This document shows, piece after piece, positions 1 through 52,711 of a stretch of 64,000 bases of DNA. The DNA lies in the NCBI GenBank assembly GCA_965644295.1, contig CBFFRP010000127.1, positions 62,001 through 126,000 of the forward strand, written 5' to 3'. Below the pieces are notes generated by a model that had not been told where the DNA came from, made no database searches, and saw only the letters and a list, made by a program, of their open reading frames with translations. The first letter of the stretch is position 1, and each line of letters begins with the position of its first letter. The position numbers were made by a program, and so were the translations under genes. This DNA is from Paraphysomonas bandaiensis. Taxonomy: Eukaryota; Protista; Chrysophyceae.

Positions 1-1226
1 AGGCCACTCCTTGGAAATCTAGCACGAATGAAAGACTCGTCCAATGACTTCCTTGGGTAAGTCACACGTAATGTAATTAATTATAACAATAATAGTTTAT
101 TGTGAACTGCCATAATTTTTCCCCATTTTTTAGTGTATAATAAAAATCGTCAGTGCTAGTCGACAACAAAATGGCTCCAAGTTCATTGAACGAGATGCAT
201 TTTTATTTGATAATGATACCTACACTACATGTACATCGTTAAAATGCAATGAAATAGAACTTTTCTATTGTGTCCTCCAGCTTTTTTATATCGTTTTCAA
301 GATAGATTAGGGTTTTGTAACCAATGGCAGATAAAATTTGATCAAAGCAGGGTTATTTTTATCCATCAAGTCTTTTCAATCGATTGCAGAGGGTACCCAT
401 TATATGACTCTTATTTCTAATATGCATGTGAGGGGGTATGTAGCACTATTAATAGTCACCATCTCATACATACGTGAACACGCATCACTTCAGTTGAGGG
501 GTTGAAGAGAACATGACGGTCACGTAGATTTATCGGCTTCTGTCTTGAAATCATCTCATTTCATAGCACTATTGAGAGCACTGCAAGAGAACAGTGAGTG
601 TCGACCGCATCTCATAAGGGCTTTTCACTGGGTCTGAAGTTGCAACCTCCGCCTTAAACAAGTGTGAGTTGAAGGAATGGAACAGCAAGAGCTTCCACAG
701 CTCACACGGCGGATGTACACACACACATAGTGAGCACGAGCAACATAATAATAGTCATGTAATCTTATTTATGCAGTGATACGAATTATCTCAACCTGCC
801 TTTACTACGTATAAGTGTCCACGTCTTGCGTCCATGTATGTCCATGTCACGCACAGAGCAGACGTCACTCCATGGTGTACTATTTTATTGGCTGAGAGTG
901 GATACGAAGTCATTTCTATAAAATTCTCCGATTTTTAGACTTAAATTGTACAGAGTATGGTATCACACACATCATAAAAACAGGTTATTTGGAAGACCAT
1001 TTCCCCGATTTGCGTAGAAATCTAAGAATTTTGTGCGAGTTAGTGTGTATGCCGTATGTACGGTATCTTGTGATGCGTATATGTACAGAGATGTACGATG
1101 CAAAGATGTCAGCAGGCTGAGAGTGAATATCTAGACTAGTATGATGGGGAAGGGAAGAGCAGTTGGACATATTTCACCATCAACCCTATATAAAATCATC
1201 CATAATATGGTTCTTAATCAATTAAC

Positions 1227-2252
1227 ATGCTAACTGACTCGCCGCTCTCGCCTAGCTGTCAATCACCAAGAAGGAACTGCGTGTATCCGTGTTCCCAGTC
1301 ATCTGATTCATTTGAATCTGAATTTGGTGCTGTTGTCACTGATAGTAACAAAGACAAATACGTCACTAAACTAGAATCATTTGATGATATCTCTGAAAAC
1401 TCTGAAGCAGTTCCGACTGCTACTGTAAAAGCAACAGACCCTAATGCTGAAATGGTTGCTCTGCTGCAACAAATGAAGATTTTGATACAAACCAGTATTG
1501 ACAATATGAATCCTGCCGATTCAGCGCGTGTTGACACAAAAGGGACTACTCCGGTTCGTGATCAGCCCGACGTGGCGCCAAGATGTTCATCTTTGCTATA
1601 TCGACTCCGAAATAGCACAATCTGGTCATATTGGTGGTGTGGTCAGGATATTGACAGCGTAGAAGTCGACAAGCTGATTCATATTTTCTTACTGGTAGGA
1701 TCACTGACCTTTATGATTTATTGTTGATTTTTCTTTCATTGACACATTCCTTACTCATTTTCTAACACACAAAACGTTATGTAAATGCAGGTAAATGTCA
1801 TCGTTATTATCGTACCATTTGAGTCCATTTTCAATTACAACTTTGAATTCTGGAGCGAAGTGGATGATTTGAGTCAAAATTGCGACAGAGAAGACAGATC
1901 ACGATATGTGGATGTCATGTCAGATATTCGTCGCGACTTTCTTACCATAATGGTTGGCTCTGTGCTGGCAACATCTATTTGTGTGATATACTTCATTCTC
2001 CGTCCAATAAAAAGAAAAGGCGACGAGTTTGTTCAATGGTGGATTCGTGGCGGCCGATACCCTATCTTTGTTTGCGCTGTGTGCACGCTTCTATCTCTTG
2101 ATACACTTGTGCGGTTTATGGCTCACATATTTCGAAACTACATGTTGCGCCCCGAAGACTTTTGCGATCAGCCTAATGGTGTGCACACTCGCTTAGGATA
2201 TGGCGTCTTTATATTTACACTTCTGCTATCTGCAGTCTTCATGACCATATAG
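1227..2252 (+). CDS. Hypothetical membrane protein (disordered N-terminus, about 4 TM segments), 2 exons
   Basis: ORFs 1227-1727 and 1785-2252 join in phase 0 through a GT-AG intron 1695-1790 (...IFLL|VNVIVIIVPF...). Hydrophobic segments lie in the C-terminal half. Confidence 0.65.
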
Positions 2253-2631
2253 AAATATTAAATCATATGGTTGATGGCAAGTGATATATCATATGTCATA
2301 TTATTTTTCATTTGTAATATGACAGCAGGTAATAAAATTTGATAATTTGGTTCAGTCTATGTATATAGTAATCAGTGCAAGTAATAGTACTGCAAAATCA
2401 AGAATTGCACGATAGTATAACAATTCGTCGTTGCCTACATTCATTCGATTAAGTCTATATATGTATGCAGTATTTAGTTAATGTAGCAATACTGCTAATC
2501 AAGTATTTTACAATAGCACTACAAGTCGTCCTGTCCCAATTCTGGCGACCTTGAGCATCCATTTTATATTATTACCAATTTCTACTATATTATTGAAATA
2601 TTTTGCTCAAATCGCAGTCATGACTCGTAGT

Positions 2632-3122
2632 GAATGTCTTATTAATAACAATAATACAATAATATGCGTGTAAGAGTGCTTAATTCTTAACCCTGATATC
2701 CTACTATTAAACACTTTGAAAGCTGCTTGTGCGTCCTACCAAGCACCAAGGTGCAGCCACTTTCGCTCTGACACTCAAATCGAACGCAGTTAGCGAGCAG
2801 AATGTTAATTAATCTACCTGACATTGTCTGACTTCAGGACTCTTGAGTCCTCAAAGTATACAGCCCGGAGGCTTGAATTCAGCAGGCAGCCCAATACCCC
2901 GAATGTGCTTGAGGTGGGTCTGTGTATTTGTCAAGGCCGAAAGAGGTCTACACAGGTGAATCTTAGTTGTGTCCTTTGTACCACACAAGCATTTGGCTAT
3001 GAGTGGGAAGAATGTTATCTGTCTACTATATATAATGGCTCACATTAGTTTCCCGGAAATATTTCTCCGGGACTTATCCTCCAGAACATCACGCAAAGGT
3101 GCGAGCTCAACTTCGTTGAGGG
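2632..3122 (-). mobile_element. RIME/SIDER-like short retroposon, copy 1 (near full length, tail type A)
   Basis: Aligns by eye with the copies at 5941, 20698, 28344, 41116, 52712 and 53531 (core GCTGCTTGTGCGTC..CAAGCACCAAGGTGC, and GCAGGCAGCCCAATAC). Shares the 3' end ...AATAAGACATTC and the 5' start CCCTCAACGAAG. Confidence 0.85.
3037..3122 (-). ncRNA. HDV-like ribozyme-like motif (Ingi Pr77-type) at the retroposon 5' end
   Basis: Order on the minus strand: CCCTCAAC..P2 GCTCGC, P3 ACC, L3 TTTGCGT, GAT, P1' GTTCTGG, TAAGT, P4 CCCGGAGA-AATA-TTTCCGGG, J4/2 AAACTAA, P2' GTGAGC. P1 and P3 are imperfect. Confidence 0.6.
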
Positions 3123-3778
3123 GCCGTTATAACTTAACTTTCCGATACTAAGGTATCCTAATATACCTGTTTGCTTCAACAATGATAATATGAGCGTATT
3201 TGCAATGTTCAGTCATGAACAATATACCATTACCACCTATTATTGTTCATTATTGAACTGGAAGGATACACATCCATATCTTGTCCTCATGTCCTAATAT
3301 CTTGGATATATTTTGGATGCATATTTTGGATATTTGCATATGTGCATTTTGCTTGTGGAGCAGATGATGAAGAAACTCTAAGCTAAACCAATCTAGAAAA
3401 CGATGTTTTTGAGGTGACTTGATTTCGAAAAGTGGCGATATCTAGATAATCCAGTACGACAGGAATACTGTATTATGCTGATACAGTGGTGTATATGTCA
3501 GAAAGTTCGTAGAAGTGCGTAGGCTAATTCTCACTGTATGCTATATACTGCAGTGCAGTGGTGTGAATACAGGCAGTCTCTATAGATATGAAGAAGAGAG
3601 AAGTAACTTTCGTCATGATTCTGCGATATATCTTGGAGGGTTCCTGTGGGAAGATACGGCATACAGCATACATCACAATACGAATACATCCATCTGATCT
3701 CATCGACACTCATATACATACACACACATATACAACTCATCTCAGTCACTTTACTCTATAAGCAACCAAACAACAGTC

Positions 3779-5733
3779 ATGGGTAACACACAACCTAGTA
3801 ACTCTTCTCAGTCCTGTGGGATTTGTACGACCTCTACAGCTAATACGACATGTATAACTCTAGCGTGCTGTGGTGCTATCTATCACCAGAAGTGTCTCAA
3901 GGCTCTCGTATCATCTGGAGCTACAAACTGCCCTTCCTGTGCTTCTCCTCTTCCATCTGATAGTGGTATTAGTATACCAGCCCCTCCTGCTCCTGCTCCA
4001 GCTCTACGACCTCCACCAGTCCCAACAACCCCGATAGTGTCCATAGCATCCATGCCTGAGGAACCTGTAGAACGATGGGTTCCACCACCTACAGATGAAG
4101 CTATTGCAGCACTCTCAAATGCGACTATTGTAATTGAAGCAATTCCTGAGCTGTGAGTAACTTTGCGTGTAAGAAATTGGTTTAATCTATCTCGTGTAGA
4201 CCTCAAGCCTCCCTCGATATGCAAAATAATTTTCATACTGTGGTAAGTCTTACCACAGAAGAGTCATCTACAGGAGCTTGTAATATGAATGAGACTTCCG
4301 CGGCTTCTCACTCTAGACCTCCTATGGATGTAATATGTGTCCTTGACACGAGCGGTTCTATGAGTTCATGCAATAAACTTGTAAATCTGAAACATGCCGG
4401 TACTTCATGTCATTCGTATATGTTTTTTTCTAATCTCATATACTCTTGATCTTTTAGTGGACTATGTGCGCAGCGAGTTGACAGATAAAGATCGAATGGC
4501 GGTGATCAACTTTGAAAATTCCGCGACCCTTGTCCATGACCTGTTACTGATGAACGATAGTAACAAGCAAACCACGACTGCTGTATGTTCCCAATTGCGA
4601 CCCGGGGGTGGTACAAGCATTGTGTCGGGTCTAGACGCAGCATACAACATGATATCCACAAGGGCCACAAGCAACCCTATTACCAGTGTGTTTCTTTTAA
4701 CGGACGGAATTGACTCCTCTCACATGGCCAGAAAGAAGGTAAATGAATGTCGCACATATTGGGATAAATTGCTTATTTTGTGAAAAGACCGTCTCTCGTC
4801 GTATTAAGGAGGCCGGGTGCTCGCTCTTTGTCTTCGGATTTGGCAATGACCATGACAGTGCTCACCTTCAGGTATATTGCTCTGCTTCCTCTGACTTTGA
4901 CAGAGCCACTTAATTTCACTCTTCAGGCGATCGCAGATGCTGGTGACGGCACTTTTACCTATATAGAACAGTCTGACATGGTAGTTGACGCTTTCGGAGG
5001 TGCCCTTGGAGCTGAACAGAGTATATTTGCTACCGAGGTGTGTCTACGTATTCAGACTATGGGAGGAACAACAATCACTACAGCAGAGACTGGTAGTTAT
5101 AGACACAATATAAGTTCAGATCGGCATAGCATGGATATATATCTGAGCAGAATGATGATTGGGGAAGAGCGCGACATGCTATTGACCCTGAGTATACCAG
5201 CCTGTGAATCCCCAGTGGAAAGATTCCCTATATTATGCACAAGTGCATCTTATATTTCAGTGGGTACTACTGAGACGAAAAGAGTGAGTGGCTCTGAATG
5301 CCACATTAGTAGGGTACACAAAAACGATCTTAACGCCAACGCTGTTCGTGACGAAAGGGTTGAAGTACAGTGTAATCGAATGGTTCTTCTGCGCGCGACA
5401 CGGGGATCATTGGAGGCAGCCGACAGAAATGACTATTCGGAAGCACGAAGGACTGTGGAAGAAGCACTGCGTACAGTGAAATCTTCACATTCTACTCAAG
5501 CAGGAAACCCTAAGTGTGCTGCTTTTGTTGCTGAACTAAACTCCACTCTCGAAAGTGTCTCGAATCGTGAAATATACACAACCCGCGGCGGGCGACATAA
5601 TCTAGCGGAGCAAACTCAGACCTTTTCGAAACAGAAACTGTGTTATGCAAAGGCTGGAAGGGCAAATTTGTACCAAAGCAAAGTTTCTGCGTCTAAACAG
5701 TCTGAGGCATCTGCATCAAAGAGAAAGTACTAA
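3779..5733 (+). CDS. RING finger + vWA (+Vwaint-like) domain protein, WAV3/EDA40-like E3 ligase architecture
   Basis: CGIC..CCGAIYHQKC..CPSC RING, proline-rich linker, vWA motifs DVICVLDTSGSM, GGGT and VFLLTDG. Four short introns join the ORFs at 3779, 4219, 4394 and 4780. Confidence 0.85.
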
Positions 5734-5940
5734 TTAAGATTTTGAAAAATTGTGTTCAAAGAGTATTTTAATTTAGGAGTCATATCTTATATCGAAAAGT
5801 TGTAATAAGTCGGTGCTTTTACCTTTCTTCTCTAGTATACAACTTTATTCCCACAATTATTTTCCCATTCTTTCATTCAACTTACTTCAAGTCTTCAAGT
5901 GTACTACTCTTAATTCTGAATGCTATAGAGTAGAAGTAAA

Positions 5941-6449
5941 TATGATATTATTAGCAATAATAGGCGTGTAAGAGTCAGAAGTAATGTAGCAAAACAATAT
6001 CAACTAACTTGTGGTTAACTCTAATATCCTAATATTTAAGAACGCTACAAAAGCTGCTTGTGCGTCCTACCAAGCACCAAGGTGCAGCCACTTTCGCTCT
6101 GACACTCAAATCAAACGCAGTGAACAAGCAGAATGTTAATTAATCTACCTGACATGTGCTGACTTTAGGATTCTTGAGTCCTTAAGGTGAACAGCCAGGA
6201 TGCTTGAATTCACAGCAGGCAGCCCAATACGCGGATGCCCTTGTGGTGTGGGCCCATTTCCGGCTGCCTGTTTATTTGTCAAGGCCCAAAGATATCTGCA
6301 CAAGTGAATGTCATTAGTGTCCCTCGTACCACCAAGTAGTAGGCTATGCGTAGGAAAAACAATATCTGCTTACTATATAAATGTGGCTCACATAAATTCC
6401 CCGGAGAAATAACTCCGGTACTTAGGCCCTTGGCACCACAAAAAGGAGC
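5941..6449 (-). mobile_element. RIME/SIDER-like short retroposon, copy 2 (tail type A)
   Basis: Nearly identical to copy 1 over 6051-6150. The 5' part reads GTGGTGCCAAGGGCCTAAGTACCGGAG-TTATTT-CTCCGGGGAATTTATGTGAGCC on the minus strand. Confidence 0.85.
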
Positions 6450-6499
6450 AATATATAGCAATTCTCTTGATAGATAGAGTTTTAACAATGTAAATGTTA

Positions 6500-6870
6500 G
6501 GCCCCGTTCGGTTCATCCAATGGATTTTGGTGCTGGATTTTCATTTACTGGATATTTGAAAAATTCCACTGGCTGAAAAATACTGTATTTGGGTAATCCA
6601 GCAAACAGATATATAGCACATCTTACAGAACGATTGTCACATCCGGTATACGTGTATTTAACGCATATACTGTATGTGTAAGCTGTGTAATCATGATTCA
6701 AAAATCTAGCGCTTCTCAAAAACCCAGTGAATAGTCTTTCGACTCAAAACTAATTTCGCTGGATTTTTTCCAGCAACTGAGCATATTTTGCTTTTTTACG
6801 TTCGGTACGATTTTCCAAATTCCAGTGGATGGACAAAATCCAGCACTTTTTAGGTCTACCGAACGCACCC
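6500..6870. mobile_element. PIF/Harbinger (Tourist)-like MITE, 371 bp
   Basis: Terminal inverted repeats GGCCCCGTTCGGT / ACCGAACGCACCC, flanks TTA and CTA, and repeated subterminal GCTGGATTTT/AAAATCCAGC motifs. No coding capacity. Confidence 0.7.
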
Positions 6871-7038
6871 CTACATATACTGATTGCAATATATTGTGAG
6901 CTACTAGCTGAACAGTAATAATTTTGATGCAACTATTATACAGTTATTTTCATACGCAACTATTGAAAAACGAAGTATAAAGAACATAGTATAGTCAATG
7001 AAAGTATATTAATGTATAAGAAATAAAAAAAAGTTCTG

Positions 7039-9519
7039 CTACATGCAAAAACACTGGCTCTGTTTAATTGGTATAGTTGAAGGAGGATCGACAAAAGGGT
7101 TACTATTTCGTAACGATTTCTGCTGCTGGTTGTTGGGGGTGTCCGGCATTATCTCCACATCTCTGTCTTGATTCACATCATCTTCAACAGATGCCTCTTT
7201 GATAGACTTAGTTGATGGTACTCGGCTGTTCTCCGGCTTACAAATTTCTGGGGACTGGGACACAGTAGTGCGAAGTTCAGATATAGTTGAGCGGGTATTA
7301 TACGACACATCTCGAAGGGTGAGTGCATTGCTGCTTGGAGAATCTGTTGATCGTTCTTCTTCTTCATCATCTGTTGTGTGACCGCTCACTGTATCTAGTA
7401 CAGTCAATGTCAGCGCATTGCAAGTCACAACATTATCACAGGAATTTCTGGTCTCTGGAGAAGCGCCACACACTTTATCCTCAACATCATCAGGCTCTAC
7501 TGAAGTTAATATTTGGGCCTCATCGCGAGTACATACAGTCTGAGTTACATCGCCTTCCACTCCAGCTTCAGGCGTATTCAGGATATCGTTCTCGTCTCCA
7601 GTGACATCTATCACATTCTTGCTCTGATCATCATTTGGTGCGCTATTGCCTGTTTCACACAAGTCAACATTTGTATGTTCTCCATTTTGTACAATATCCA
7701 CTGTTTCCGCTTCAACTTTGCCGGACAGACCTCCTATCACATTCTTGTCCTGGTCATTATCTGGTGCACTCTTACCAGTTTCACACAAGTCAACATTTGC
7801 TTGTTCTCCATTTTGTAGAGCATCGACAGTTTCCGCTTCAACTTTTCCGGAAAGAACTTCACAGACACCCACAGAATCACAATCGTTTCCTAAGCTTTTA
7901 ACTACGGGACGGCTATGTGTAGAACCCGATATTGGGGAGACATCACTGTTTGCGCCAGCATAAGATGATGTGACAGATTCATCTCGGTCGGAATTAAGAA
8001 AAGAATCAGATGAGGTGACGACTTGTTCAGGTTTAACCGGGGATGGGCATTCAGGTGCAGTAGCGAGAGACCATTTACTAGTCTCCCCATCTGACACTTT
8101 GCGGTAGAAACTGCCCTGTCTTGTTTTTGTCAAAGGGGACAAATCTGGGACAGAGTTATGTTTGGTGAAAGATGCACGCCGCTCAGCGACTAGACTTCTC
8201 CTCGGTGATTCCACAGTTGTATGTGCTTTCTCATCACTGCACTTGTCACTTTGGCTAGCTGATGGGGCAGATATCCATGAGTTGTCCGGGCTGTGAAGCT
8301 TATTTGGAGAAGTTGCGCTGGCTGAGCGACTTATTGGTATTATGCGTGGCGGGGCCCTGAAGTCTGTATACGTCGTTGTGCCATTACTACGAATATGAGG
8401 TTTTACATTGTTGCTACTATTATCACTGGAAATTTCGGATTGGGTTGCATCAACCACCTCCGTTTCTACTTTTAAGTCACTGCCGTTAACGCCACTTGAA
8501 ATTCTGTCCGAAGTCCATCGTTCAAACAGCAATTTAAAAACTATTGGCTCTTGAGTGCCATGAATGTGATGAACATTTTTCCCAGAGTTGTGGTATGTTT
8601 TGGAGACGGCGTCTAAAGCTTCTTCTGTCAGTAACACAGCATCTGGCGCCTTGCCAGTCCATACATAAACAACATATCCACACTCCACAATGTAAACCCC
8701 TTTATCAGATAATACACTGGGAGGAAGACGATTACATCGCCCGGAAGAGTCTACATTAAATTTTACCACAGTATCCAGAGTCGAAGAAGGATTATTAGAA
8801 TAGCGGAATACCTCCACCGGACTGTTGGGGACAGGCTCGTTAGTATCTACACACGGCTCAACTTCAGTGGTGGCAGATAATTTATCATCACCCGCCAACA
8901 GCTTCCACAACACCTTCTCATTTATGCCCATGTCGCCAGGTGGTTCAGTTTGGCGAATGAGGACTGGGGGACGAGAACATTTGAGATCCATCCCTGACAT
9001 TACCGGTGCAGCACCCGTTACAATATTTCCATCTTCCTGGTCACAGAGTTTGCCTATCCACATATATAACTGACGCTCCTTGGGGTTATGGATTAAATAT
9101 GCACAATGGATATTTAATTTGTCACCACTAGAGTGCGGAATGTACTGGAGAGACTTCTTGAAGCATCGGTATAGCTGTAATGAACCGCCGACAGTTTTAC
9201 GTATCGAGTTATCACTATGTGTTCCATAAACGGCTTTCTCTTTAGCGATGACCGGTACTGGTATCCGAGAGAGTGAGCGCCCCCCTCCCTCTCTGTCTCC
9301 ACTCCAGTCCCTTCCTCTCTCCCTACATGAAGACGCTCGTCGAAGAGTCATCTGCTGTCCGCGCTGAGATCTGATATGATCCTCTATATAAGGAGCCAAG
9401 TACTCGTCCAATCGTCCCTCTTCTTCAGCGGTCTGCAGGCCCATTGAGTCTGTTTTACGTAACTTGCTTTTCACCACCACCGCCGCCCGCTTCCTCTCAA
9501 ATTCAGAGAACTGATTCAT
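7039..9519 (-). CDS. Gelsolin/villin-repeat protein with long disordered tail and C-terminal CaaX (CFCM)
   Basis: 826-aa ORF with two gelsolin-like segments (LNIHCAYLIH..QLYMWIGK; VYIVECGYVVYVWTGK..EPIVFKLLFERW). Ends in CFCM-stop. Confidence 0.75.
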   Translation of the reverse strand: MNQFSEFERKRAAVVVKSKLRKTDSMGLQTAEEEGRLDEYLAPYIEDHIRSQRGQQMTLRRASSCRERGRDWSGDREGGGRSLSRIPVPVIAKEKAVYGTHSDNSIRKTVGGSLQLYRCFKKSLQYIPHSSGDKLNIHCAYLIHNPKERQLYMWIGKLCDQEDGNIVTGAAPVMSGMDLKCSRPPVLIRQTEPPGDMGINEKVLWKLLAGDDKLSATTEVEPCVDTNEPVPNSPVEVFRYSNNPSSTLDTVVKFNVDSSGRCNRLPPSVLSDKGVYIVECGYVVYVWTGKAPDAVLLTEEALDAVSKTYHNSGKNVHHIHGTQEPIVFKLLFERWTSDRISSGVNGSDLKVETEVVDATQSEISSDNSSNNVKPHIRSNGTTTYTDFRAPPRIIPISRSASATSPNKLHSPDNSWISAPSASQSDKCSDEKAHTTVESPRRSLVAERRASFTKHNSVPDLSPLTKTRQGSFYRKVSDGETSKWSLATAPECPSPVKPEQVVTSSDSFLNSDRDESVTSSYAGANSDVSPISGSTHSRPVVKSLGNDCDSVGVCEVLSGKVEAETVDALQNGEQANVDLCETGKSAPDNDQDKNVIGGLSGKVEAETVDIVQNGEHTNVDLCETGNSAPNDDQSKNVIDVTGDENDILNTPEAGVEGDVTQTVCTRDEAQILTSVEPDDVEDKVCGASPETRNSCDNVVTCNALTLTVLDTVSGHTTDDEEEERSTDSPSSNALTLRDVSYNTRSTISELRTTVSQSPEICKPENSRVPSTKSIKEASVEDDVNQDRDVEIMPDTPNNQQQKSLRNSNPFVDPPSTIPIKQSQCFCM
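7611..7851 (-). repeat. Intragenic tandem duplication, period 126 bp (42 aa)
   Basis: LSGKVEAETVD..QNGE..NVDLCETG.SAP..DQ.KNVI occurs twice. Confidence 0.9.
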
Positions 9520-12437: not shown

Positions 12438-14042
12438 ATGGAAGAGCTGCTATCTTGTCAAATCTGCTTTGAGGCCTATGACTCGACGACTCATGAGCCA
12501 CGTGTGTGTCCATGTGGTCATACATTCTGTGTATCTTGTATCAATATCCTATTACTGGCATCGAATCCTCGGTCTATGCTGTGTCCTCTTTGCAAATTCA
12601 AGTTACCAAGAAACATCGGTCAGTTCCCGAGAAACTATGATATAATTGGCTTGTTTTCGCATAGTGAGAGTGAATGTAGTCCGATATGCTTGAACAGACT
12701 AGATATTGTTGCACGGTATAAGAAAGATATTGAGCGAGAGTATGAAATTGTGGCAGGCCAGGAATTGGAAGTCAGAAACTATGAAACACTAATATCTCAA
12801 ACTCATGAATATCTTCAACAACTGAGTTCAATGGCAACAAACGCATCTCGACAATTAGAACAGTCGCGCAGACGACTGGCTGAGTTGGAATTAACGGTAT
12901 CTAACATGGAGCTCACGAAATCAAACAGCTCAACAGGTACGGCCAGAGTTAAACAAGCTGTATAGTAGTGTACCAACAACAATATTACAGTAAACAAGCT
13001 TGGTCCTTTTCCTTCTGAATCGTTTCCACCACCCTCTGCAAGTGAGAGGCGATTCATAGACCGGTACGGCCTTTGTTTATTCGGTTTGTGGCTCACATTG
13101 CTGATAGGCAATATAGTGGACCAGGTCATCGACTATCGTTGCTAGATGACATAAGGTACATACAAACACCAACAGTGTGAACTTTCATCTGGACTTTGTA
13201 CTCACTAAAGATATAGGAGGCACCGTCTGACATCAACATCGCCTGTGCCTGCTCCACCACCACCTCCACTGAGGCAATCTAGAACTGAAGCCGTTCATGA
13301 TACAGAAATAGCACATCAAGACAGTCCGTCTGTGAGTTCTCCTGATGATCGACAATCCTTGCTAGATGACATAAGGTATATACAAACACCAACAGTGTGA
13401 ACTTTCATCTGGACTTTGTACTCACTAAAGATATAGGAGGCACCGTCTGACATCAACATCGCCTGTGCCTGCTCCACCACCACCTCCACTGAGGCAACCT
13501 AGAACTGAAGCCGTTCATGATACAGAAATAGCACATCAAGACAGTCCGTCTGTGAGTTCTCCTGATGATCGACAATCCTTGCTAGATGACATAAGGTATA
13601 TACAAACACCAACAGTGTGAACTTTCATCTGGACTTTGTACTCACTAAAGATATAGGAGGCATCGTCTGACATCAACATCGCCTGTGCCTGCTCCACCAC
13701 CACCTCCACTGAGGCAATCTAGAACTGAAGCCGTTCATGATACAGAAATAGCACATCAAGACAGTCCGTCTGTGAGTTCTCCTGATGATCGACAATCCTT
13801 GCTAGATGACATAAGGTACATACAAACGCCAACAGTGTGAACTTTCATCTGGACTTTGTACTCACTAAAGATATAGGAGGCATCGTCTGTTATCAACATC
13901 GCCTGTGCCTGCTCCACCACCACCTCCGCGCAGACAGAGAAGTGGTTCTCGATTCGAGTCCATGAGCTATTTGTTGCGAAATAATCCGTTTGTAAGACGT
14001 GATATGGTGGCAGCAGCAGGTACTGGTGTGAGCTTAGCGTAA
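12438..14042 (+). CDS. C3HC4 RING + coiled coil + 4 WH2-like/polyproline repeats
   Basis: CQIC..CPCGHTFCVSC..CPLC RING. Introns 12937-12990, 13064-13107 and one 61-nt intron per repeat give an open frame with repeated RQSLLDDIRRHRLTSTSPVPAPPPPP. The 3' end could include a further exon. Confidence 0.8.
13141..13927 (+). repeat. Tandem repeat, 220-bp unit x about 3.6, near identical (159-nt exon + 61-nt intron)
   Basis: Units start at 13141, 13361, 13581 and 13801 with GCTAGATGACATAAGGTA. Confidence 0.97.
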
Positions 14043-14788
14043 CCACTGAGAGAATCGTAAATATGCTCTACAATCAACTATCCAAATGTTAGATGCAGAG
14101 AGTTTTCATGATATTGTACACACATAATTAGTACTCTCTGTATTGTGTATTATATATTACTCTATAATATTTCTCAGGATTCAGAACTCAGCACTGTCAC
14201 TTTTCATGATTATAGTAGTAAATAATAAATAAGGCATTTCTAATTTCCTGAATGAGAGAATTTTTAAAGTTAATTCACTACACAAAGATATTTAAGGTGT
14301 TTGAGATCGGCTGCTAGCTCTATTAGTTTCGCTCTATCACTGTAGAATTGTGATAGTACGGGTTGCTGCAACAGAGCAGCAATCACTAACTCCAATATAC
14401 TATCAACACATCATTTCATGGCAAAAAGTATACTTAAGGGAGCTACTAGTATGCATTTAAGAGTTCGATGCGCTCAAATAAAATGCGCAATCAAATTTCT
14501 CTGAATATGAGCACAAGATTTTATCATTATTTTTATTGTCGTTCTTCCGATGGATTAATTAGGTACTCACATCGGATTTTCTGCTGAAATCATTAGCAGA
14601 TTTTATGTTCTGTACAATGTAGAGTAGCTTTGGTTCATAAACCCAGCCCCGCTGTGCGCTCGTCAACTAGGAGAATATGAAGTGTTTCCTTTACAAGCAA
14701 AGGTATTGCGGTAGTATTAATTAAACTTTTGCATAGCAGCATATAATTTTCGCCGTAAATTTGCAGTGTAGGACCACAAGGTAATTAA

Positions 14789-19682: not shown

Positions 19683-20697
19683 ATGATGAATATGCGATTC
19701 CAAATTGCTCATCATATGTCACATATATTTTCTTTCGTTGTAGTTGTTGTTGCGATTACATAAGTAATAATATTTATAACCTTTGCTTTGTTGTTGATGT
19801 AGTTCTAATTTGCGACATACTCTTAATCACATCTGATCTCGGATATAGCAATGCACTCGGAAATTCGAAATTTCTATCAGATAAACGACGTATTGATAAG
19901 TAAAATACTGTCATATGATATATAGACATATTTAACCACGCATCATAAGGAGGCTGAGTCCTCCCACGGACAATGGGTGATATTTTTCCCAAGTATATAT
20001 TATATAGTTTATGCTATGTGTACTTTTCTATAGAATCAAAGACAGGCCACCAAATTGGGATAATAGATTTGATGCAGTGAAAACTAGGGCTAGGGAGCAA
20101 CATATTGAATTGCAATATATTGTAAATTATATTGATGGACTGGCCAAATATTTCATCCATATTGTTTCTGTTGATGTTACTCACTGCAATATAAAGCAGT
20201 CAATATTTTGATAGTATATATATATGTTGATCAAGAGGTCTGTGATAATTGTCCCCCTTTGTACCACTATGTAATTCTTTTAATGCGGAGAGTTAGTTGG
20301 TAGTTTGTACTGCTATTTAACTATTTCTGTAGAAATTATGCCTTATAGAAGTTTAAGTTAAAAACAAATGCGTTGAAAACTCAGACCTGTATTTTTTTAA
20401 CATAACAATGTTACTTTTAGTATATATCTACTATTCACCAACAAAACCAGGTAAAATCACTTTACCAGGTTTGGGCATTACAGGCACTTTTAGTCATAAC
20501 ATACGAAAAGTCTAACTTCTTAACTGTAAGGTGAAAAATGTAAGCTCCTGCACTTAAATATCCGGAATAATAGCAAAATGCCTATATCTGTTGTTGTGTT
20601 CTAGTTCAAAGAGGACTATACACTATACACCTCATGTCGTTACCATTAACGGCTACCAGGCCCTGATGTACAGTACTTCTCTTAATATAAAATAAAA

Positions 20698-21174
20698 TAC
20701 CCTCTACGAAGTCGGACTTTTTCGTGGTGTTCTGGGTGATAAGTACCGGAGAGATTCTCGCCGGGAAATTAAAGTGAGCCGCAAGCATATAGTCAGCAGA
20801 TAATTTTCTGCCTACCCATATAGCCGAATGCTTGTGTAGACGTCTTTGGGCCCCCATGAATAAACAGGCATCCGGGAATGGGCCCACCTCAAGGGCATCC
20901 GGGACAGGGCCCACCTAAAGGGTAACCGGGGTATTGGGCTGCCTGCTGAAGTCAAGCATCCGGGATGTTCACCTTAAGCCTTAAGGACAGAGAGCGAAAG
21001 TGATAGCACCTTGTTGGTGCTTGCGACGACGCACAAGCAGCTTTCGTACCATTAAATAGTAGGATAATTGAAACCGATTAGTTTCAGGTAGAGGTCTAAC
21101 TAGGTTGACTAGTATTCATCTAGCTACTAAGGTGGTGCAGGTTTTTAACGCCTATTGCTAATAATAAGACTTTC
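20698..21174 (+). mobile_element. RIME/SIDER-like short retroposon, copy 3 (full length, 477 bp, tail type B)
   Basis: Perfect 14-bp direct repeat AATATAAAATAAAA at 20684-20697 and 21175-21188. Starts (TA)CCCTCTACGAAG and ends TAATAATAAGACTTTC. Confidence 0.92.
20700..20780 (+). ncRNA. HDV-like ribozyme-like motif, probably inactive copy
   Basis: ACT-TTTTCGT-GGT (P3/L3), GTTCTGGG, TAAGTA, P4 CCGG-AGAG-ATT-CTC-G-CCGG, J4/2 GAAATTAA (T at the position of the catalytic C), GTGAGCC. The 5' strand of P2 is partly deleted. Confidence 0.5.
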
Positions 21175-21526
21175 AATATAAAATAAAACATATATTATAC
21201 TGATAAGTAGAGGCGCCTATGAATGCTTGAAAAGTAGTGATATATTCGACTGTTTTTGGAGTACGGTTGGAAGTGAATGCAATGCAACATCTGTGGACGC
21301 AAGAAAAAGGCTCAGTAAAGCAACAGAAAGCATCGATAGCAGAGGTGTAGATGTAACCTCCCAAATTTCGTCACACCGACAAATGTTTTTCGGCTACACT
21401 ATTTTTGATTATATTCCCTTAAGAGTGTGCAACATAGGTACACGTCCTACCTTTCCTATATAGGTCTATACTAATTCTTCCTTTTAATTTACTAGATGCT
21501 CACTTGTTCAAACTTATTGAAGTGAG

Positions 21527-23836: not shown

Positions 23837-26639
23837 ATGCAGGCGGAGAGACAGGCCCGTATGGGCAGACGACAGCCAATGAGTCTTCAGATCTTATCTG
23901 CGGCGGAATTACTGGAATTAGAGAACGCTACAAGAGAGCGCCACTTCATTGATCACATTCGAGTCTTTATCCCGCTATTGCTATGGCTAGTGGATGAATA
24001 ACATCATGTGTTTGCTCATGTTGCATGTGTAGGGTGCTGTGGATGATGGTCGGGACTTGCTTCTACGCGGTGCATTCAGACTATGGATGGGCAAAAGGAC
24101 TGTACATGAGTGTTAATATTGGTATATATAATCTATAAATGCATTATGCGTCTATCTTATGTTGATGAACAGGGTGGGGTCTAAATTGGCCACTTGATGA
24201 GTCGTTTTATCAAGACGGATCATATAACACGCCGTCGTTTCGGTTGTATTCCCTCTTCCATACAGCCGCAGGGACTGTATTTTTAGGTGCATCCACCATA
24301 TATATTGCTCAGGTAATGACGGGTAGCAAAGACAATTGGATCAATAGGACAAGGGCGGATACAGGTGACTCTTGGTTGTCCCACTTGTCTGCACGCCTCC
24401 CGCATTATAGAGCCATCATGTTGCTAATTGTGTGGTTTTTCCTTGGAGTTGTATGGTTTTGGGCTCTACAAGATTGGGATATATTAAGTTCTATTGACTT
24501 CGTAATATCTACTCTTACGGGTGGTGGATACCGAAGCATAGTATTTTCTTCACCGAATTGGCAGTACGCGATGGCAGCATTGTACACTACAGCGGGCGTC
24601 CCACTCATGGCGATTACCATCGGACTCTCGGTTAGTGTTTTCTTTGAGCCTACTAATGATGACCTCATTAGCAAACTTATTGCTGATATAACGCAAGAGG
24701 AGCTTAGTTTCATGGAAGAATATGGGGTGATTGACGGTGACGGTGAGGTAGATAGGTCTGAGTTCATCATTCTTATGACCGTAAGGATTGGAAAAGCGTC
24801 TCCCGATCTCATCGGAACTATAAATGATCGTTTCAGAGAACTGGATCGAAGGCATATGAAACGAATTCCCTACGACGACATAATAGCTGGGCGCCGACAG
24901 GTGACTCCAGCAATGCGGAAACTCGCGTTTGCACGAGGATTGAGTTCCATCAACCTCAACTCATTTGCTGATGTGGTGTCTGGTTCACTCTCTCCCCGTC
25001 AACTTGTATCTTCGGGTTCGTTTTTAAGCTCTCGTTGTAGTGTAGACAGCATTGTAGAAGAGACAAGTGCAGCTGAAACTAATATGGATGGCGTTCCTTC
25101 CGCTCCTAACGAAGGGTGTGTATGTGCCAATTCTGGGGATGTGGAATTGGAAGTTGTTCAGCAAGACATTTCCGTGTCAAGCCCAAATACAAGTAATCAC
25201 ACTGCCGGAATTAAGCTCGAGATAGAAATCCCTGAGGTTGAAGATGACTCTCATTCATCCAGAAGTACAGGCTCTTCTCAAGATGAACATAGTACTGTGG
25301 AGTGTGGAAGTAGGAGCGACGATAAGGTCCAAGAGATGAAAACTGCATTCAGATCACGTCGTGGTCAAGCTAAATCACTACACTCCATCATTGGGAATCT
25401 TAGGGATACACCCATTGCCTCATCACGGAGAGGCAGTGTGTATGCTCCGTCTCCACTTTACGCCCCATCTCCAATGCTCCTGCGTACTCTCTCTTCAACT
25501 CTTAAGATAGAGGATCAGGACACTTTGTCCCCATCAGGCAGTGATATGGCTGTTGTTGGCGACAGATTGCTTTGTATGTCGCATGCATTTCGCTCCTTTC
25601 ACCCGTATGTGAAGATATTTATTTCATGGTACATTATATACTTGTATATATTGTTTCTGGTGGCTGACGGTTTTCAGGGTACTCTGGGTCCTCATTGGGA
25701 CATTATTCTACTCTCTGTATGACGCTACTGGAAGTGGAAGTAGAATATCCCCTGCAAGAGGCTTTTACATATCCACTAGTGTTGGTGTGGGTATGTTTTG
25801 GATGAGAGGCGAGAACAGCCTTGAATACGATGCAGTGGTAAAGGTTTTCACATTGGCTCACATGTTGCTGGGAGCTGTAGCGGTGGGAGTCGTTCGTGCT
25901 GCTGTAGCCAATGAGCTCGCAGAGTCGAAATCAAACTGGTATTTTGCTGAAATGAGCATTGTGTATATGTGTAATAGAAATAATTGCTAGGTATAAAGAC
26001 GTGTTACGTAAAAAGAAATTAGCTGCCTGCGCTAAATCGTCAAGCGTGTGGGATTACGCAGTCGAATTGTGTAAGTATTACGGCCCCAAGGAGAAGGCTC
26101 ACATAGCGTTCTTGTCCTTTTGCGCAGTTGGGGTGGGATGGTGTTGTGGCCGATTTGATTTCTACTTTCTCCGAGCACTGTTTTTTAGCTTTTCTTCCAT
26201 GACAGGTGGAGGTCTTCAGCCAGTACCGCTTGACGCGAAGGACTGGGAATATGCAGTAGTTGGACTATATGTTGCATGTGGAACACCAATAGCGGCTGTA
26301 TCGTTGAGTCTTTTGGCTCAAACCATAGCATCTACAGGAGCAAAAATGAATTTAACTGATATTATGAATACGCTCATTACCGAAAAAGAACTCGAAATGA
26401 TGAGATCATTTGAAATTGAAAATGGCGATGGCTACATTACAATGAGTGAGTTTGCTGTCTTAATGCTTGTACGAATGGATGCCATAAGTACGGATATGAT
26501 AAAGGTTATTAATGAGTGGTACCATGGGCTTGATCCGGGAGATGCCGGAGGAATATCATATGATAAGCTGACCCGATCTCATGTTGTCACCGGTCGCTCG
26601 TGGAGGAAGAAAGTCGCAGCTGTAATTGGGCGTGGGTAA
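23837..26639 (+). CDS. Tandem TPK/K2P-like ion channel: 2 x (4TM/2P + EF-hand pair)
   Basis: Pore-like segments SVNIGWG, TLTGGGY, STSVGVG and SMTGGGL; EF loops DGDGEVDRSE and NGDGYITMSE. Four introns, including 23986-24032 (GC-AG) and 25629-25677. Confidence 0.8.
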
Positions 26640-27429
26640 GATAGTCGTCGTATGGTTCCGGTGGCCTTCGTATTTACGCAGTAAATACCATAGCTTTACC
26701 GGCGGTTGAGTTCAAATTACTTCCCGAAATTGTATATATATCCCTGGTACATTAACAGATCAGTAGTCGTGATGGCTTTTGTGATGTTGATGATCAGTAA
26801 TTTATCAGTGCAGAAAGCACTGTTTTTATGTGACATCGCTTCAGTGATTTCTGTCAATACTGTAAATTATATTAATTGAAAGGATCTTTTTTTGTTTGTA
26901 AGTGCGTAACCAGCAAACCCATCAACGTTTTTGATAAAAATATATAAAATATGGGGGTCGAATTTGAATCTGATGTCGGATGAATATGATGTAAAAAGTG
27001 TGTGGTTCAAAAAAATCTACTCAATTCTTGAAAGTGAGTTACTGTGTTTCAAAGTCCAAAGCTGGTGTTTAACTACAGTGTATTGTCCTATATGTCAACA
27101 AAACAACAATTACACATCAGATGATGGCAGTCAACTAATTACGAAACGCAAAGATAGTACTACCTATATACTATATATAGGTTATGTTAAATTGGGAAAT
27201 TGTTGCCCAGCCCTATAACAGTAAGACACGTATATTGATGGAATATACATATTAGGACGATGATAAGGTTGTGTTGTTGTATGGTGATTTTGGGGAACAC
27301 AACAATAACCAACATGAATATTTCTCTCTACAAGTCGTGTTTTTAATTGCTACTGTATTTTCAGTTTCTTTACATAATTTATTCCTTTTCCTGTTGTTGT
27401 AGTTTTTTGTAGATTCTGTATTTCATTGA

Positions 27430-27515
27430 TACACAGAATTCAGGATAGCTACTAGTTAGCAATATCATCAACATACTACAAGTACATACTTGAAGTAGGT
27501 TGGATTTAATAAATA
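27430..27515 (-). repeat. Degenerate dispersed repeat (family 3), matches 40812-40890
   Basis: Minus strand CTAGTAGCTATCCTGAATTCTGTGTA vs CTAGCAGCTATCCTGTATTCTGTGTA, plus upstream TATTTATTAA..ACTTGTAGT. Confidence 0.7.
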
Positions 27516-28343
27516 GAGAAAAGATCATATGAATTCGTTCATAGCGTAACAATGTAATCGTGGCATTTACACAACCGAGTAATTTATTACACAAATACTT
27601 AAAAATCTAATAAGATACAGAATCACATAACAATAAAATGGCAGTCCGAGGTAGACCTGGTTTTCCCGCCTTAAATTTTAAAAGGTTAACTGGTCCAAGC
27701 AAATAATATCTTCATAGATAGTATCTTTGTGTTACTTTTTCCTGTATCACCTTCGTTTCGTTCTGCGCAGTGTAAAAAGGGTGCTCATAAGTCTCTCTCG
27801 AAGATCAAGTTAGTATCTTGATCTTTACCGTGGGTAGCTGCTGGCAGGTGTTGAACTTGATGAATACTTTTAGCGTGCATACGAGAGGGTGGTCTAATAT
27901 AATAATATATATGTATATATATAGTATAAAAGCTACGTCTGACTGTTCAGTGTTATAAAACCTTCTCGACGTATACTACAGTTATGTTGTTTATGGCATG
28001 CATCAAGGTCTGATGCACAGTTCTTCGCAGATATAGGCATCCTTGAAACACTTTAAATGGAATATGTAGACTGAGTCCCAAGTAAGTGCACAAGCGTGAT
28101 AAAAAGTTGGGGCAATATACCTAACCTGATAAAATTGACTTTTATACCAGGTTTCATTAAAGATTATTTTATTGTAGTGTGTATCTCAGTAGTAGGGTTC
28201 ACAATAAAAAAAAATCACAACTAAATCTATTGAAAATTAGGTCGTGTAAGATATGGCGCACTTTTTCACGTATGGACGCTTTTATTTACTCACACTTATG
28301 GCTAATATACATATTAAAAATATTTATTTCTCTGTGTTATATT

Positions 28344-28613
28344 GAAAGTCTTATTATTAGCAATAGGCGTTAAAAACCTGCACCAACTTTTAGTAGCTAG
28401 ATGAATGCTAGACAAACTAGTTAGACCTCTACCTGTAACTAATCAGTACACACTTTTTTTATCCTACTATATTTAGCGCTACGAAAGATGCTTGTGCGTC
28501 GTCGCAAGCACCAAGGTGCGACCACTTTCGCTCTGAGTTCTTATAAGGTGAACATCCCGGATGTTTGACTTCAGCAGGCAGCCCAATACCCCGGTTACCC
28601 TTCAGGTGGGCCC
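28344..28613 (-). mobile_element. RIME/SIDER-like retroposon, copy 4 (5'-truncated, tail type B)
   Basis: Colinear with the reverse complement of about 20906-21174. Confidence 0.88.
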
Positions 28614-28749
28614 AGTCATCTCTTCCTTCATTCTGGCTTTATGTTTGTTTTCTGACACAAAGCGAGCAAACTGGCATTTCTTGATGAAAGATCTAAAGAC
28701 GTTTAAGAATGCCAGTTTGCTCTAATCCGTCAGCAATTACGACAAAAGT

Positions 28750-28990
28750 GCACGAACTGATTCTGGACAGCGCCAAGGTCACTAAGAGAGCTCGACTTGG
28801 TACCTATGAGTCCAGCTACCGCTGCTTGCTTCATATCAAAGCACAATCTAATATCTAATGTTGTTGAGAGGCTCTGTAGTCGTGCAAAGTTGATTATATG
28901 ACACCTGGGCGTAGATGCATGAACCCTTCTTGTCTAGAATCGTTGCTATTCCTACGAGCCAATTACATCTTGTGGGATGAAGCCCTGCAA
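28750..28990 (+). pseudogene. hAT transposase C-terminal dimerisation domain relic
   Basis: With two frameshifts it reads YRCLLHIKAQSNVVERLCSRAKLI/MTPGRRCMNPSCLESLLFLRANYILWD, matching the hAT SxxxERxFS..R..L.P..LE.LLFL.xN pattern. Confidence 0.8.
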
Positions 28991-29052
28991 GAAGCAAGAA
29001 GATCCTGATGTGTCAGTGGAGAGCGAGAAGTATTGCTTTACGACTCGTAGTC

Positions 29053-29132
29053 ATAATCATTCAGTGGATTCTTCTAGCCACTAATTAGTGCAGGTTTTCA
29101 ACGCCTATTGCTAAATAATAAGACATTCAATA
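29053..29132 (+). mobile_element. RIME/SIDER-like retroposon, copy 5 (80 bp, severely 5'-truncated)
   Basis: Tail GTGCAGGTTTTCAACGCCTATTGCTAAATAATAAGACATTC, flanked by ACGACTCGTAGTC (29040-29052) and ACGATTCGTAGTC (29133-29145), 12/13 identical. Confidence 0.85.
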
Positions 29133-29729
29133 ACGATTCGTAGTCTGCTATTACACTAAATTAATTAGTAATCAAGTGCAAAATTCATACTTTCTCTCGA
29201 CATTTCTTTCGTGAATAGTTTTCAACTATCAGTATAATATATTTGACAGGAGAGGTTTGCTTACGGATAAATTTTCAATTTATTATGAAAACCTTTAAAA
29301 TATACAAAAAACCAATTAAACCACCAATAACTGGGTCAATACAGCATATCAATATGCGAGGATCACTAGTAGTTTGGGATACTCATTTACTACTAGTACG
29401 CTCTGATATAAAACGAAGCATCAATACACATATACTCGAACATAGCCTAAGCTTTCGTTAGAATAAGAAGATAGATGTTCCGCATCTATCGGAACAAAAT
29501 TAATGTACTCCGCAAGCCGCATATATATATACTTGAGGTCACCTGTATCAGGCAACCTATAAATAAAAAATGGTATAGTATTTGTAAATTGGAACAGTGA
29601 ACTAAAGAATAACTGACTCATGAATACGGTGGTACAGCAGCTGGTGGACAGACTACAATGATATATTGAAGTCTCCTCACAAGATTTCTCGGCTCCACAT
29701 ACGCTCAAGGCACAATGACTTCATGGTGC

Positions 29730-31337
29730 CTAATATATCGACTCATAAGGTCGATGACACTGCGGTGCGACAGTAACGCGAGGGTGCGCTTTCTCCAAAG
29801 TAGAGCCTACACGCGTCATCATCATTGCGTTGTGGGGAGAGAGATCCCACCGCTCCATCGCCATCGCAGTAGATGTCGGCGAGTCAGCAAGAGTCCGAGA
29901 AACCCTTCGCGGAGGAGACCGAACTGAATGATCCCCTGGAATTCGAAAGACCCTTGGGTAGTCAGCATCCACAGTACATTCTGCAGAAATTAAATAATAA
30001 GATATTGAAAATAACCGTAGAATCCATACAGCTTACTCACCACGATCAGCAGATTGGAGCACAAACCCGTCAGCTGTCTCCCAATCATCCAGCCCATACG
30101 AAACTGGACTGGATGCCATAGTGTGTGGATTCGAGGTAGGTGGGGTGCTAAACTCGTCAAGGAAGGATGATGCGGACGACGATGTTGTGGACGCAGAAGA
30201 TCTTGACAGTCTCCTAATAGCTATGGAGGAAAGCTCAGATTCCTCCAACAGACGATCATGAACAGTAGAGAGGTTCACGAACACGGCAAGGCGAGACCCA
30301 CTGCTATGCTTGTTGCGAGTGTTAAACGGATCATCGTATGATGTGGTGGAGTCGGAAAGATGAGTTTCGCGAGACTTGTTCTTGCGATTTACTGTGGTGT
30401 TGTCAGTGCGAACAGATGCTGCAGCGACTGTGCAGAAATCAACAAAGTGGTTCCACCTGAATGAAAACTATGAACAAGGCATACTGAATACAGGGGTATA
30501 AAAACTCGGAGTAGGCTAACAAAACCAATTTAGTCTAGCTGCTAGATACGAATACTTACAGGCTGTACATTGCTTCGGAATCACTATAACACCCAGTCGG
30601 AGTCGTGGCAGCAGGAACAGTGTACCTGCTGTAAACAGATCCCTTCCCGTGAGTAGTACGCGGGATTGTGGGCCAGTAGAAGCTATCTTGCGACTCCTTA
30701 TCCTCCTTGTTTTTCTTCTGTACAGAAGTCAGAGGGTATTGACGAAAACATGGGTACCTACCCTTGTCTTGCTCTTTGCAGTGGGGTGCATAAGTCGCGG
30801 ATCATGGATGTATATACCTGCCCATATACATAAGGAAAACATAACCAGGTCGTAAATATCTTACATCTATCGCGGTATGGGCACCAACCAACAGAGATGA
30901 AAGTCCTGTGTAATGGAAATTTGTATTAGAATAGGCAATCTAGAGAGGTATAAGTACGTACTTGCATGGCAGTTGGCGAGTTTTATCATTATTATCATCT
31001 GGACACATTGATGACACAGCACAATGACTTCTACCACGCCTGTCCATATCAAAAGGGACACTGCCTACTGATAGTGACGTTAGAGTCGAAGGGAATGAAG
31101 TTAAGTCAAGTGTGTACCTGGACGGGACGTGGAAGTGGAGAGAGAGAAGGCCTTATTCATAGAGGGCTGTCTCATTGCAGTCATATCAGTTCTCTGCGAT
31201 ACTCATTAGAAGCGACATACAGCATTGAAAGGCTGTACCTGATAAGGGTAAGAGAGGGAAGGAGCAACTCCTCGGTCCAAGGGTGCTCTCTCTACACGCA
31301 TATCCCGGTAGTGGTCGTGACTTATCTGGGCAAGCAT
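29730..31337 (-). CDS. CCCH zinc finger RNA-binding protein (single finger, TTP/ZFP36-like spacing)
   Basis: Spliced KTRQLPCK|TFISVGWCPYRDR|CIYIHDPR (C-x8-C-x5-C-x3-H), with a 41-nt exon at 30865-30905. Ser-rich C-terminus from ORFs 30033 and 29730. Confidence 0.8.
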
Positions 31338-40890: not shown

Positions 40891-41115
40891 GCAGGGCACG
40901 GTAACAATATAATATCGTAAACTATATTGAACCGGCCAAAAATTCCATCGATATTGTTTCTCTGTTAAAGTGGCTCACAATATTTTGATAGTTATATTAT
41001 ACGAAAAGCTTCTTATCTGTAGGGTGTAAAATATCAGTCCATGTACATAATATATATACGGAAAAAGAAGTAAAGCTTATTTCGTATCACCAGCTCATAT
41101 ATAGTAAACTCAAAT

Positions 41116-41644
41116 GAATGTCTCATTATTAGCAATAGGCGTGTAATAGTCAGAACTAATATATATCAAACAATTTAACTAACTTGTGATTAACTCTGAT
41201 ATCCTAATATTTTTAGCGCTACGAAAACTTCTTGTGCCTCACCGCAAGCACCAAGGTACAGTAAGCAAGCAGAATGTTGATATACCTGACACCTGACATC
41301 TGCTGACTTCAAGATTCTTGAGTCATAAAAGGTGAACAGCCCGGATGCTTACTTCAAGGGAAGGGGTCTTTTGCCCACAGCTGAGGCACCATCAAAGTGG
41401 GGGTATTTATGGGTTTTGTGGTGATAGTTGGAGGTGTTGACCTGGGGTGGGGTTGGGTATAGGTCACAGACCGTCTTGTCACTCCTAGAAGTCGGAGGAC
41501 TGGCGGCTGTCTCTGCTTACTACTACGCGTTCTGGGAGGGAGTCTGTGTGTAGCCCTCGAGGAAGCAGCGTAGCGTTGACTGCGATCTTAAAGCACATCT
41601 GTTTGACCGCTGCAAATAGTGGTTGAAGTATACTCACCACAGGG
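41116..41644 (-). mobile_element. Retroposon copy 6: family 3' half (41116-41356) joined to about 290 bp of unrelated C/A-rich sequence
   Basis: Type A tail and core with an internal deletion. Possible decayed TSD ATAGTAA..ACTC at 41101 and 41645. The 5' boundary is uncertain. Confidence 0.7.
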
Positions 41645-41990: not shown

Positions 41991-42290
41991 TCAAGAAGAG
42001 GCTCCTGAACGATGAGTGCATACAAAGTAGATATATTTGCCACTGTTTTTGGAGTCCGGTTGAAGGAGAACTAAACAAGCACGAGCAGACGACTTCAGAA
42101 TATTAAGCATTAGTTGGCCTCTTATTTGGCAAGTAGACCTGCTAATAGAGGGAATTTGAAGCCAAAACATCCTGTTACCAGAAAAGATGACTGTCATACG
42201 AGGGCTCTTTATCTTTCAGGTTCTGTTAAAGCGGTTGTATCCAGAACGAGAAAGGCTTACCGGATGCAGTGAGCTCTTACTGCTCGACAT
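41991..42290 (-). CDS. Possible small 3-exon gene or gene fragment (about 73 aa), unknown function
   Basis: ATG at 42290; GT-AG introns 42223-42260 and 42139-42178 keep the frame: MSSSKSSLHP|NLKDKEPSYDSHLFW|STCQIRGQ...GASS-stop. Confidence 0.35.
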
Positions 42291-52503: not shown

Positions 52504-52711
52504 ATACTAAAATATATGTAAAATATCTGTGACCGAAAGTGAAAGTATTTGCAGTGAAGTAATTTCGATGAGTGTTATTGAATTATTTGTATTATATTTC
52601 GTAGTAATAAGCAATGACTATTTCGAGTAACTGTGCAGTTGTTAGGGATGAAATGCTGAATTCAGATACAATAAATGACTATGGGAAATACGCACCCCAA
52701 ATCATGCAAGT

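Follow-up and report, generated by a model that had tools for sequence, protein, structure and literature searches.

A non-coding retroposon family of a protist genome that probably spreads through a LINE-derived tail, with a candidate ribozyme head

Copies, termini and target-site duplications

The 64,000-nucleotide stretch of Paraphysomonas bandaiensis DNA analysed here (the window) carries genes of eukaryotic character, with a UBR box, Utp12, an RSN1/OSCA channel and DUF547, one protein that is 100% identical to an MMETSP transcript where the next best hit is at 65%, and eight related repeat segments that an earlier note, made from the window's letters, had interpreted as a non-coding retroposon family. 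All eight were recovered with blastn and a repeat finder. With two exceptions discussed below, they belong to a family that is short, non-coding and dispersed, carries target-site duplications (TSDs), is subject to truncation and shares its tail with a long interspersed element (LINE), and which is therefore a short interspersed element (SINE) in the broad sense. The absence of an open reading frame (ORF), of A and B boxes and of poly(A) stands as first described, the longest open frame in the element being 67 amino acids.

The search was extended to the 62.6-Mb assembly (669 contigs), in which copy 3 as query gave 3351 candidates at first look; the full-length set that was retrieved comprises 30 loci. 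The large genome-wide family that had been predicted is indeed present: a 30-nt head sequence has at least 959 near-identical occurrences and the 30-nt end of the B-type tail at least 420 (at ≤2 mismatches), and the reversed-pattern control gave 0 for both. Depth over the tail in DNA contigs is 2000–4400 times that of unique flanks, a ratio that fits thousands of copies and is not itself a copy number. Twenty-six full-length copies measure 492–515 bp, with a mode of 510, and their median pairwise identity is 97.3%. This identity, together with a divergence of 0.2–3.9% between full-length copies and the family profile, shows that the family is young.

Full-length copies start with CCCTCAAC (CCCTCAACAAAGTCGGAC) and finish with ...AAGACTTTCAATAT. 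The element of ~510 bp is laid out as an 87-nt head, a body of ~230 nt that holds 2.4 copies of a 27-nt repeat, and a 190-nt tail. An automated search found TSDs of 9–16 bp (median 12) in 23 of the 30 full-length copies, compared with repeats of ≥8 bp in 3 of 870 mismatched flank pairs used as control. The junctions are exact, as the TSD abuts the first base, C1, in 19/23 and begins directly after CAATAT in 19/23. Many copies in the family are 5'-truncated. The reading of fixed 3' ends, truncated 5' ends and TSDs as the mark of target-primed reverse transcription (TPRT) is thus upheld genome-wide, and copies outside the window do not lack TSDs, the outcome that the earlier note had named as adverse.

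The 3' junction shows further variation. Some insertions have (AT)n extensions past the tail, and some show the tail's terminal 13–14 nt (AAGACTTTCAATA[T]) twice in tandem (L006 at ~2000–2030; window 54026–54051). Both features suggest slippage or re-priming of the reverse transcriptase (RT) at initiation. Copies also lie inside one another or in clusters within 1–2 kb (L014, L024, L027, L029 and L069), and at L024 at least four head-bearing copies occur within 3.5 kb.

The partner LINE and the shared tail

Searches of the genome with RVT_1 and Exo_endo_phos revealed several LINE families with long open frames and dozens of copies, while a search with PF14529 gave no matches. In one of these, family D, the sequence 3' of the RT matches SINE positions 320–509 at 87% identity, and the SINE-like tail lies 2363–2551 bp downstream of the RT in two copies on different contigs. 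Two family D copies that are 99.5–99.7% identical, one at C352:172968–180242 and one on C433, delimit a unit of 7,275 bp. Its 3' boundary is the last base of the SINE, and LINE nt 7085–7273 (the last 190 nt) correspond to the SINE tail. A single ORF (nt 82–7029, 2,316 amino acids) encodes a SET domain (E 2.5e-9), an AP (apurinic/apyrimidinic) endonuclease (Exo_endo_phos) and the RT (RVT_1). SINE nt 1–319 have no match anywhere within the 7,275-bp unit, and the LINE begins at its 5' end with CTATCCTG..., which bears no relation to the head of the SINE.

The histone methyltransferase-like SET domain is N-terminal to the endonuclease and RT within one ORF (L070:2550–4199, L072 and L068:1–2397), and two copies with 99.5% identity both have it. 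A protein in ENA, 73% identical, likewise fuses SET with the endonuclease. A search of the literature gave no published description of a LINE with a SET domain.

Seven LINE and SINE tails were aligned and folded with RNAalifold. The predicted fold has two domains and 54 pairs; 97.5% of the cells pair, compared with 33–47% when the partners are slid, and compensatory changes on both sides occur at 4 pairs among the seven tails. An analogous 3' untranslated region (UTR) is found in LINE families A and B. Its first stem-loop is the same and its terminal motif, AATAAT(C/A)AGA(C/T), is similar; (A/T)TTC comes next in LINE families A and D as well as in the SINE tails. Stem-loop 1 has 17 pairs, and when the SINE subfamilies and the three LINE families are taken together, 5 of these pairs differ at both positions without loss of pairing. 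This pattern makes the stem-loop look like an RT recognition element common to the superfamily, and by analogy with stringent LINE-SINE pairs we infer that the tail structure is what the RT recognises. The basal helix of the shared 3' UTR stem-loop itself covaries, GGGA/UCCC against GAAG/CUUC, and the stem-loop can be seen at L066:2320–2376, L067:2261–2317 and 3171–3227, and L068:2456–2512.

Comparison with the LINE changes the reading of part of the window (Table 1). Of the eight segments first grouped as one family, copies 5 and 8 are 5'-truncated LINE 3' ends: copy 8 because its match, to LINE nt 6921–7273 at 75% identity, reaches upstream of the SINE-shared tail, and copy 5 because it carries LINE-type tail variants. 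The two tail subfamilies, A and B, were both found again on alignment of the copies, and copies 2, 4, 6 and 7 are truncated or rearranged SINEs, copy 4 being 94.6% identical to a young full-length copy. A 27-mer of the tail occurs three times in the window at ≤3 mismatches, compared with 0 in 100 shuffles, and the remaining copies hold more diverged forms of it.

The flanking repeats claimed for three copies had differing fates. At copy 5 the 13-bp TSD with one mismatch was found, as ACGACTCGTAGTC (29040–29052) and ACGATTCGTAGTC (29133–29145). The 14-bp repeat around copy 3, AATATAAAATAAAA, is present, but five of its bases belong to the element, because every full-length copy ends ...CTTTCAATAT; the TSD proper is AAAATAAAA(TA/CA), 9–11 bp. 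The supposed 13-bp TSD of copy 8 does not flank the element; it is the tail terminus, AAGACTTTCAATA, repeated head to tail at 54026–54038 and 54039–54051.

Table 1. Repeat copies in the window (window positions) and elements of the candidate fold in the SINE head (positions of the young master sequence, nt)
Feature	Position	Strand	Description
Copy 1	2627–3122	-	Full-length A-type SINE; head 3036–3122; short A-type tail
Copy 2	5940–6449	-	A-type SINE; 5' end truncated or rearranged at about head position 17–21
Copy 3	20700–21179	+	Full-length old SINE, 480 bp, 81% identity to main subfamily
Copy 3, 5' repeat	20684–20697	.	14-bp direct repeat AATATAAAATAAAA; TSD proper AAAATAAAA(TA) at 20689–20699
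Copy 3, 3' repeat	21175–21188	.	14-bp direct repeat AATATAAAATAAAA; first five bases, AATAT, are the element terminus
Copy 4	28339–28617	-	5'-truncated B-type SINE; element positions 238–510
Copy 5	29053–29132	+	80-bp 5'-truncated LINE-type tail
Copy 6	41115–41356	-	5'-truncated A-type SINE
Copy 7	52710–52983	-	5'-truncated A-type SINE
Copy 8	53690–54051	+	5'-truncated LINE 3' end (53690–54038) plus duplicated terminal 13 nt
Candidate P1	nt 1–6 with 40–45		
Candidate P2	nt 14–22 with 80–87		A17 bulged
Candidate P3	nt 23–25 with 33–35		
Candidate L3			7 nt, UUUUCGU
Candidate P4	nt 53–58 with 65–70		
Candidate J4/2			GAAAC75UAAC

The head of the element

A fold like that of the hepatitis delta virus (HDV) ribozyme can be drawn on nt 1–87 of the young master sequence, starting exactly at base 1 (Table 1). 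The motif C75-U-A-A, 5 nt ahead of the 3' strand of P2, which puts a candidate for the catalytic C in J4/2, is kept in nearly all of the 38 aligned heads, one decayed copy having T-T-A-A. The ensemble centroid recovers P2 and P3. Among the heads, P2 and P4 show compatible changes on one side only, while P1 and P3 carry decay mutations where the copies are old; in the window, the head of copy 1 has decay mutations within P1 and P3, and a 6-nt deletion in that of copy 3 takes out part of P2 and P3. A relaxed descriptor of the fold with P1 fixed at base 1, which was written after the sequence had been seen, fits 11 of 20,000 dinucleotide shuffles and 226 of ~128,000 natural starts in the window (0.18%).

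Similarity to a known ribozyme was assessed against Pr77 of L1Tc (PMC1874656). The global alignment with the head scores 48, compared with 31.5 ± 4.7 for shuffles; 5 of 2000 shuffles reach this score, as do 0.2% of natural windows. The motifs CCCT, at the start, CACC-N7-GGTG (the seven bases ending in CGT) and GAARCTAA fall in register in the two sequences.

Several results weigh against a ribozyme. The minimum free energy of the head is unremarkable (z = −0.41), the post hoc descriptor misses Pr77, the validated positive control, and so is no validated detector, and by a stricter local score against Pr77 the head reaches 22 where the window maximum is 32, and so is not singled out. In the fold itself, a 4-nt linker separates P3 from P1, P1.1 would consist of one A-U pair at best, and the first base is C where G is usual. 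The 38 heads all belong to one lineage in which covariation is not readable. Rfam gave no relevant match for the window at the gathering threshold or for two copies at E up to 10, the only hit being a chance long non-coding RNA at E 0.4, although the models are narrow and this is weak evidence. A pattern search of metagenomes for relatives of the head gave 62 loci, none of which resembled the SINE or the LINE by blastn, and they were set aside as chance matches. On balance we regard it as an even question whether nt 1–87 form an HDV-like ribozyme.

The main rival is an internal RNA polymerase II (Pol II) promoter or initiator, which would fix the start at C1 with no self-cleavage, as happens in jockey and the I factor and as Pr77 does when it acts as a promoter. 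An exact 5' end, such as the 19/23 TSDs that abut C1, is also expected from a precise start site, and a promoter function is established for Pr77 in L1Tc (PMC1874656). One copy (L009) has a single extra G before C1, as a cap can yield; three other copies have two extra bases that are not G. What a promoter leaves unexplained is the complementarity of nt 1–6 with 40–45 in a nested P2/P3/P4 arrangement, which is rare by chance, and we consider this alternative rather unlikely.

Origin and spread of the family

RIME, to which the earlier note had likened the family, shares both ends with ingi. The likeness survives in part: the present element is also LINE-dependent and has its 3' end in common with its LINE, but only the last 190 nt are common and the first 319 nt are unrelated to it. 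Because its 5' end differs, the element is not a RIME-type short internally deleted element (SIDE) of LINE D. An origin as an internally deleted LINE of the RIME/NARTc kind, or as a hybrid in which another LINE family supplied the 5' 319 nt from its own 5' end, would accord with that analogy, with the existence of R2/R1 hybrid SIDEs (PMC3414825), with the presence of tail stem-loop 1 in three LINE families and with the excess of heads over B tails; on this last count, the head would be a module that has been combined with other tails too. The lack of any match to nt 1–319 in the partner LINE and of any head upstream of ~12 LINE copies with comparable coordinates makes such an origin improbable.

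A classical RNA polymerase III (Pol III) SINE, whose head would derive from a small RNA diverged beyond recognition, would have the typical length, the head-body-tail layout and the LINE-derived tail seen here. We judge this still less probable. ARAGORN found no tRNA in the window, and nothing at E up to 10 matched a tRNA, 5S, 7SL or snRNA. The closest candidates for an A box and a B box carry 2 and 3 mismatches, respectively, and internal runs of TTTT (nt 26–29) and TTTTT (nt 473–477) mean that Pol III would stop before the terminal motif held in common with the LINE tail. Since a Pol III head is lacking, the family is not a SINE in the strict sense.

Solo terminal repeats of a long terminal repeat (LTR), DIRS or Penelope element, which the earlier note had raised as an alternative and for which nothing speaks beyond dispersed repeat status, can be dismissed, as the TSDs range between 9 and 16 bp in length, the end that the copies have in common belongs to the 3' UTR of a LINE with AP endonuclease and RT, and there are no paired copies around a coding body.

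We therefore favour a LINE-dependent, non-coding, SINE-like retroposon of a marine protist, spread by TPRT through the LINE tail, with a probability of roughly 0.85; this figure covers the SINE-LINE account of TPRT only, the ribozyme step standing outside it. Some observations count against the account. Neither full-length LINE copy shows a clear TSD, and the A-type tails are shorter than the tail of LINE D and no exact partner was found for them. No empty site was obtained, the four public runs over 24800–30700 consisting of short-read contigs that break at the repeat.

Under the LINE-dependent account, the LINE RT would bind in trans the two stem-loop domains of the tail on the SINE RNA. The LINE endonuclease would nick A/T-rich DNA, the terminal AAUAU would pair with the nicked target, and the SINE RNA would be copied by TPRT; slippage at initiation may then produce the (AT)n extensions and tail-end duplications. 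The SINE RNA is presumably a Pol II product, in part from read-through transcription of host genes, which is the least certain step and is proposed because there is no Pol III promoter and the element has internal T4 and T5 runs. Cleavage by an HDV-like ribozyme of nt 1–87 would then set the exact 5' end, C1, a step to which we give about even odds. The fuller proposal of a promoter-less 'ribozyme SINE' falls a little short of even odds: a self-cleaving head of Pr77 type, not shared with the partner LINE, would free the RNA from host read-through, the borrowed LINE tail would recruit the RT, and the head would be a portable module of several non-autonomous families.

Stringent LINE-SINE pairs of the eel UnaL2/UnaSINE1 type, reportedly described by Kajikawa and Okada in 2002, share a structured 3' tail. 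Such pairs are reviewed in PMC3747384. The present family resembles them in that its 3' 190 nt come from the 3' UTR of the partner LINE, with the same end base and conserved stem-loops, and in lacking poly(A), in short terminal repeats and tail duplications that suggest slippage, and in its TSDs and 5' truncation. It departs from the UnaL2/UnaSINE1 type in a head that does not derive from tRNA, 5S or 7SL and lacks Pol III boxes, in the SET domain of its LINE and in its host, a marine protist.

In trypanosomatids, NARTc, RIME and SIDER are headed by the HDV-like ribozyme Pr77/L1TcRz (PMC3185411, PMC4035085). The present element is likewise non-coding and LINE-dependent, and its first ~77–90 nt could form an HDV-like fold from C1. 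It differs in that the autonomous LINE of the trypanosomatids shares the head, whereas the partner LINE here does not, and from Pr77 in borderline sequence similarity, the 4-nt P3/P1 linker and a structured tail in place of poly(A), with cleavage here predicted only. Drosophila has R2 SIDEs and R2/R1 hybrid SIDEs, the ends of the hybrids being of different origins (PMC3414825). As in R2 SIDEs, a 5' ribozyme module, a candidate one here, would be combined with a 3' end recognised by a LINE protein; R2 SIDEs are specific to rDNA and of low copy number, whereas the family here is genome-wide, at ~1000 or more sites.

The LINE and SINE of this marine protist lineage make up a complete pair that was active recently and whose 3' structure is defined and covaries; a literature search in which diatoms were the sole protist group found no SINE described for diatoms. 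At one copy per 10–20 kb, the family bears on annotation and on breaks in assemblies, and it could supply strain markers. Were the head a ribozyme, this would be a clear case of a SINE with self-cleavage in place of a Pol III promoter and a natural system for the shuffling of ribozyme and tail modules between retroposons. A true 'ribozyme SINE' would extend the strategy of L1Tc and R2 to a new eukaryotic lineage, a non-kinetoplastid protist, and to a high-copy, genome-wide SINE.

SINE sequence occurs in transcripts, in some cases inside longer RNAs. Run X10 is RNA, as its contigs skip introns, and SINE sequence is present in it at a summed depth far above that of neighbouring genes; these data are contigs, in which starts, ends and strand are not readable. 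They include a 1.56-kb RNA contig that ends in the SINE tail. The introns skipped by the RNA contigs are spliceosomal and very short, of 49 and 52 nt (25628–25676 and 25938–25989), in the ion-channel gene.

The window holds other repeats. A 59-nt direct repeat (78% identity) that does not belong to the SINE is found at 21219–21277, just 3' of copy 3, and 21 kb off at 42012–42070. Within a coding region at 13121–14080, four units are set at 220-bp spacing, three of them at 97–98% identity, and a 126-bp tandem duplication (85% identity) at 7608–7858 falls within a minus-strand ORF of 826 amino acids.

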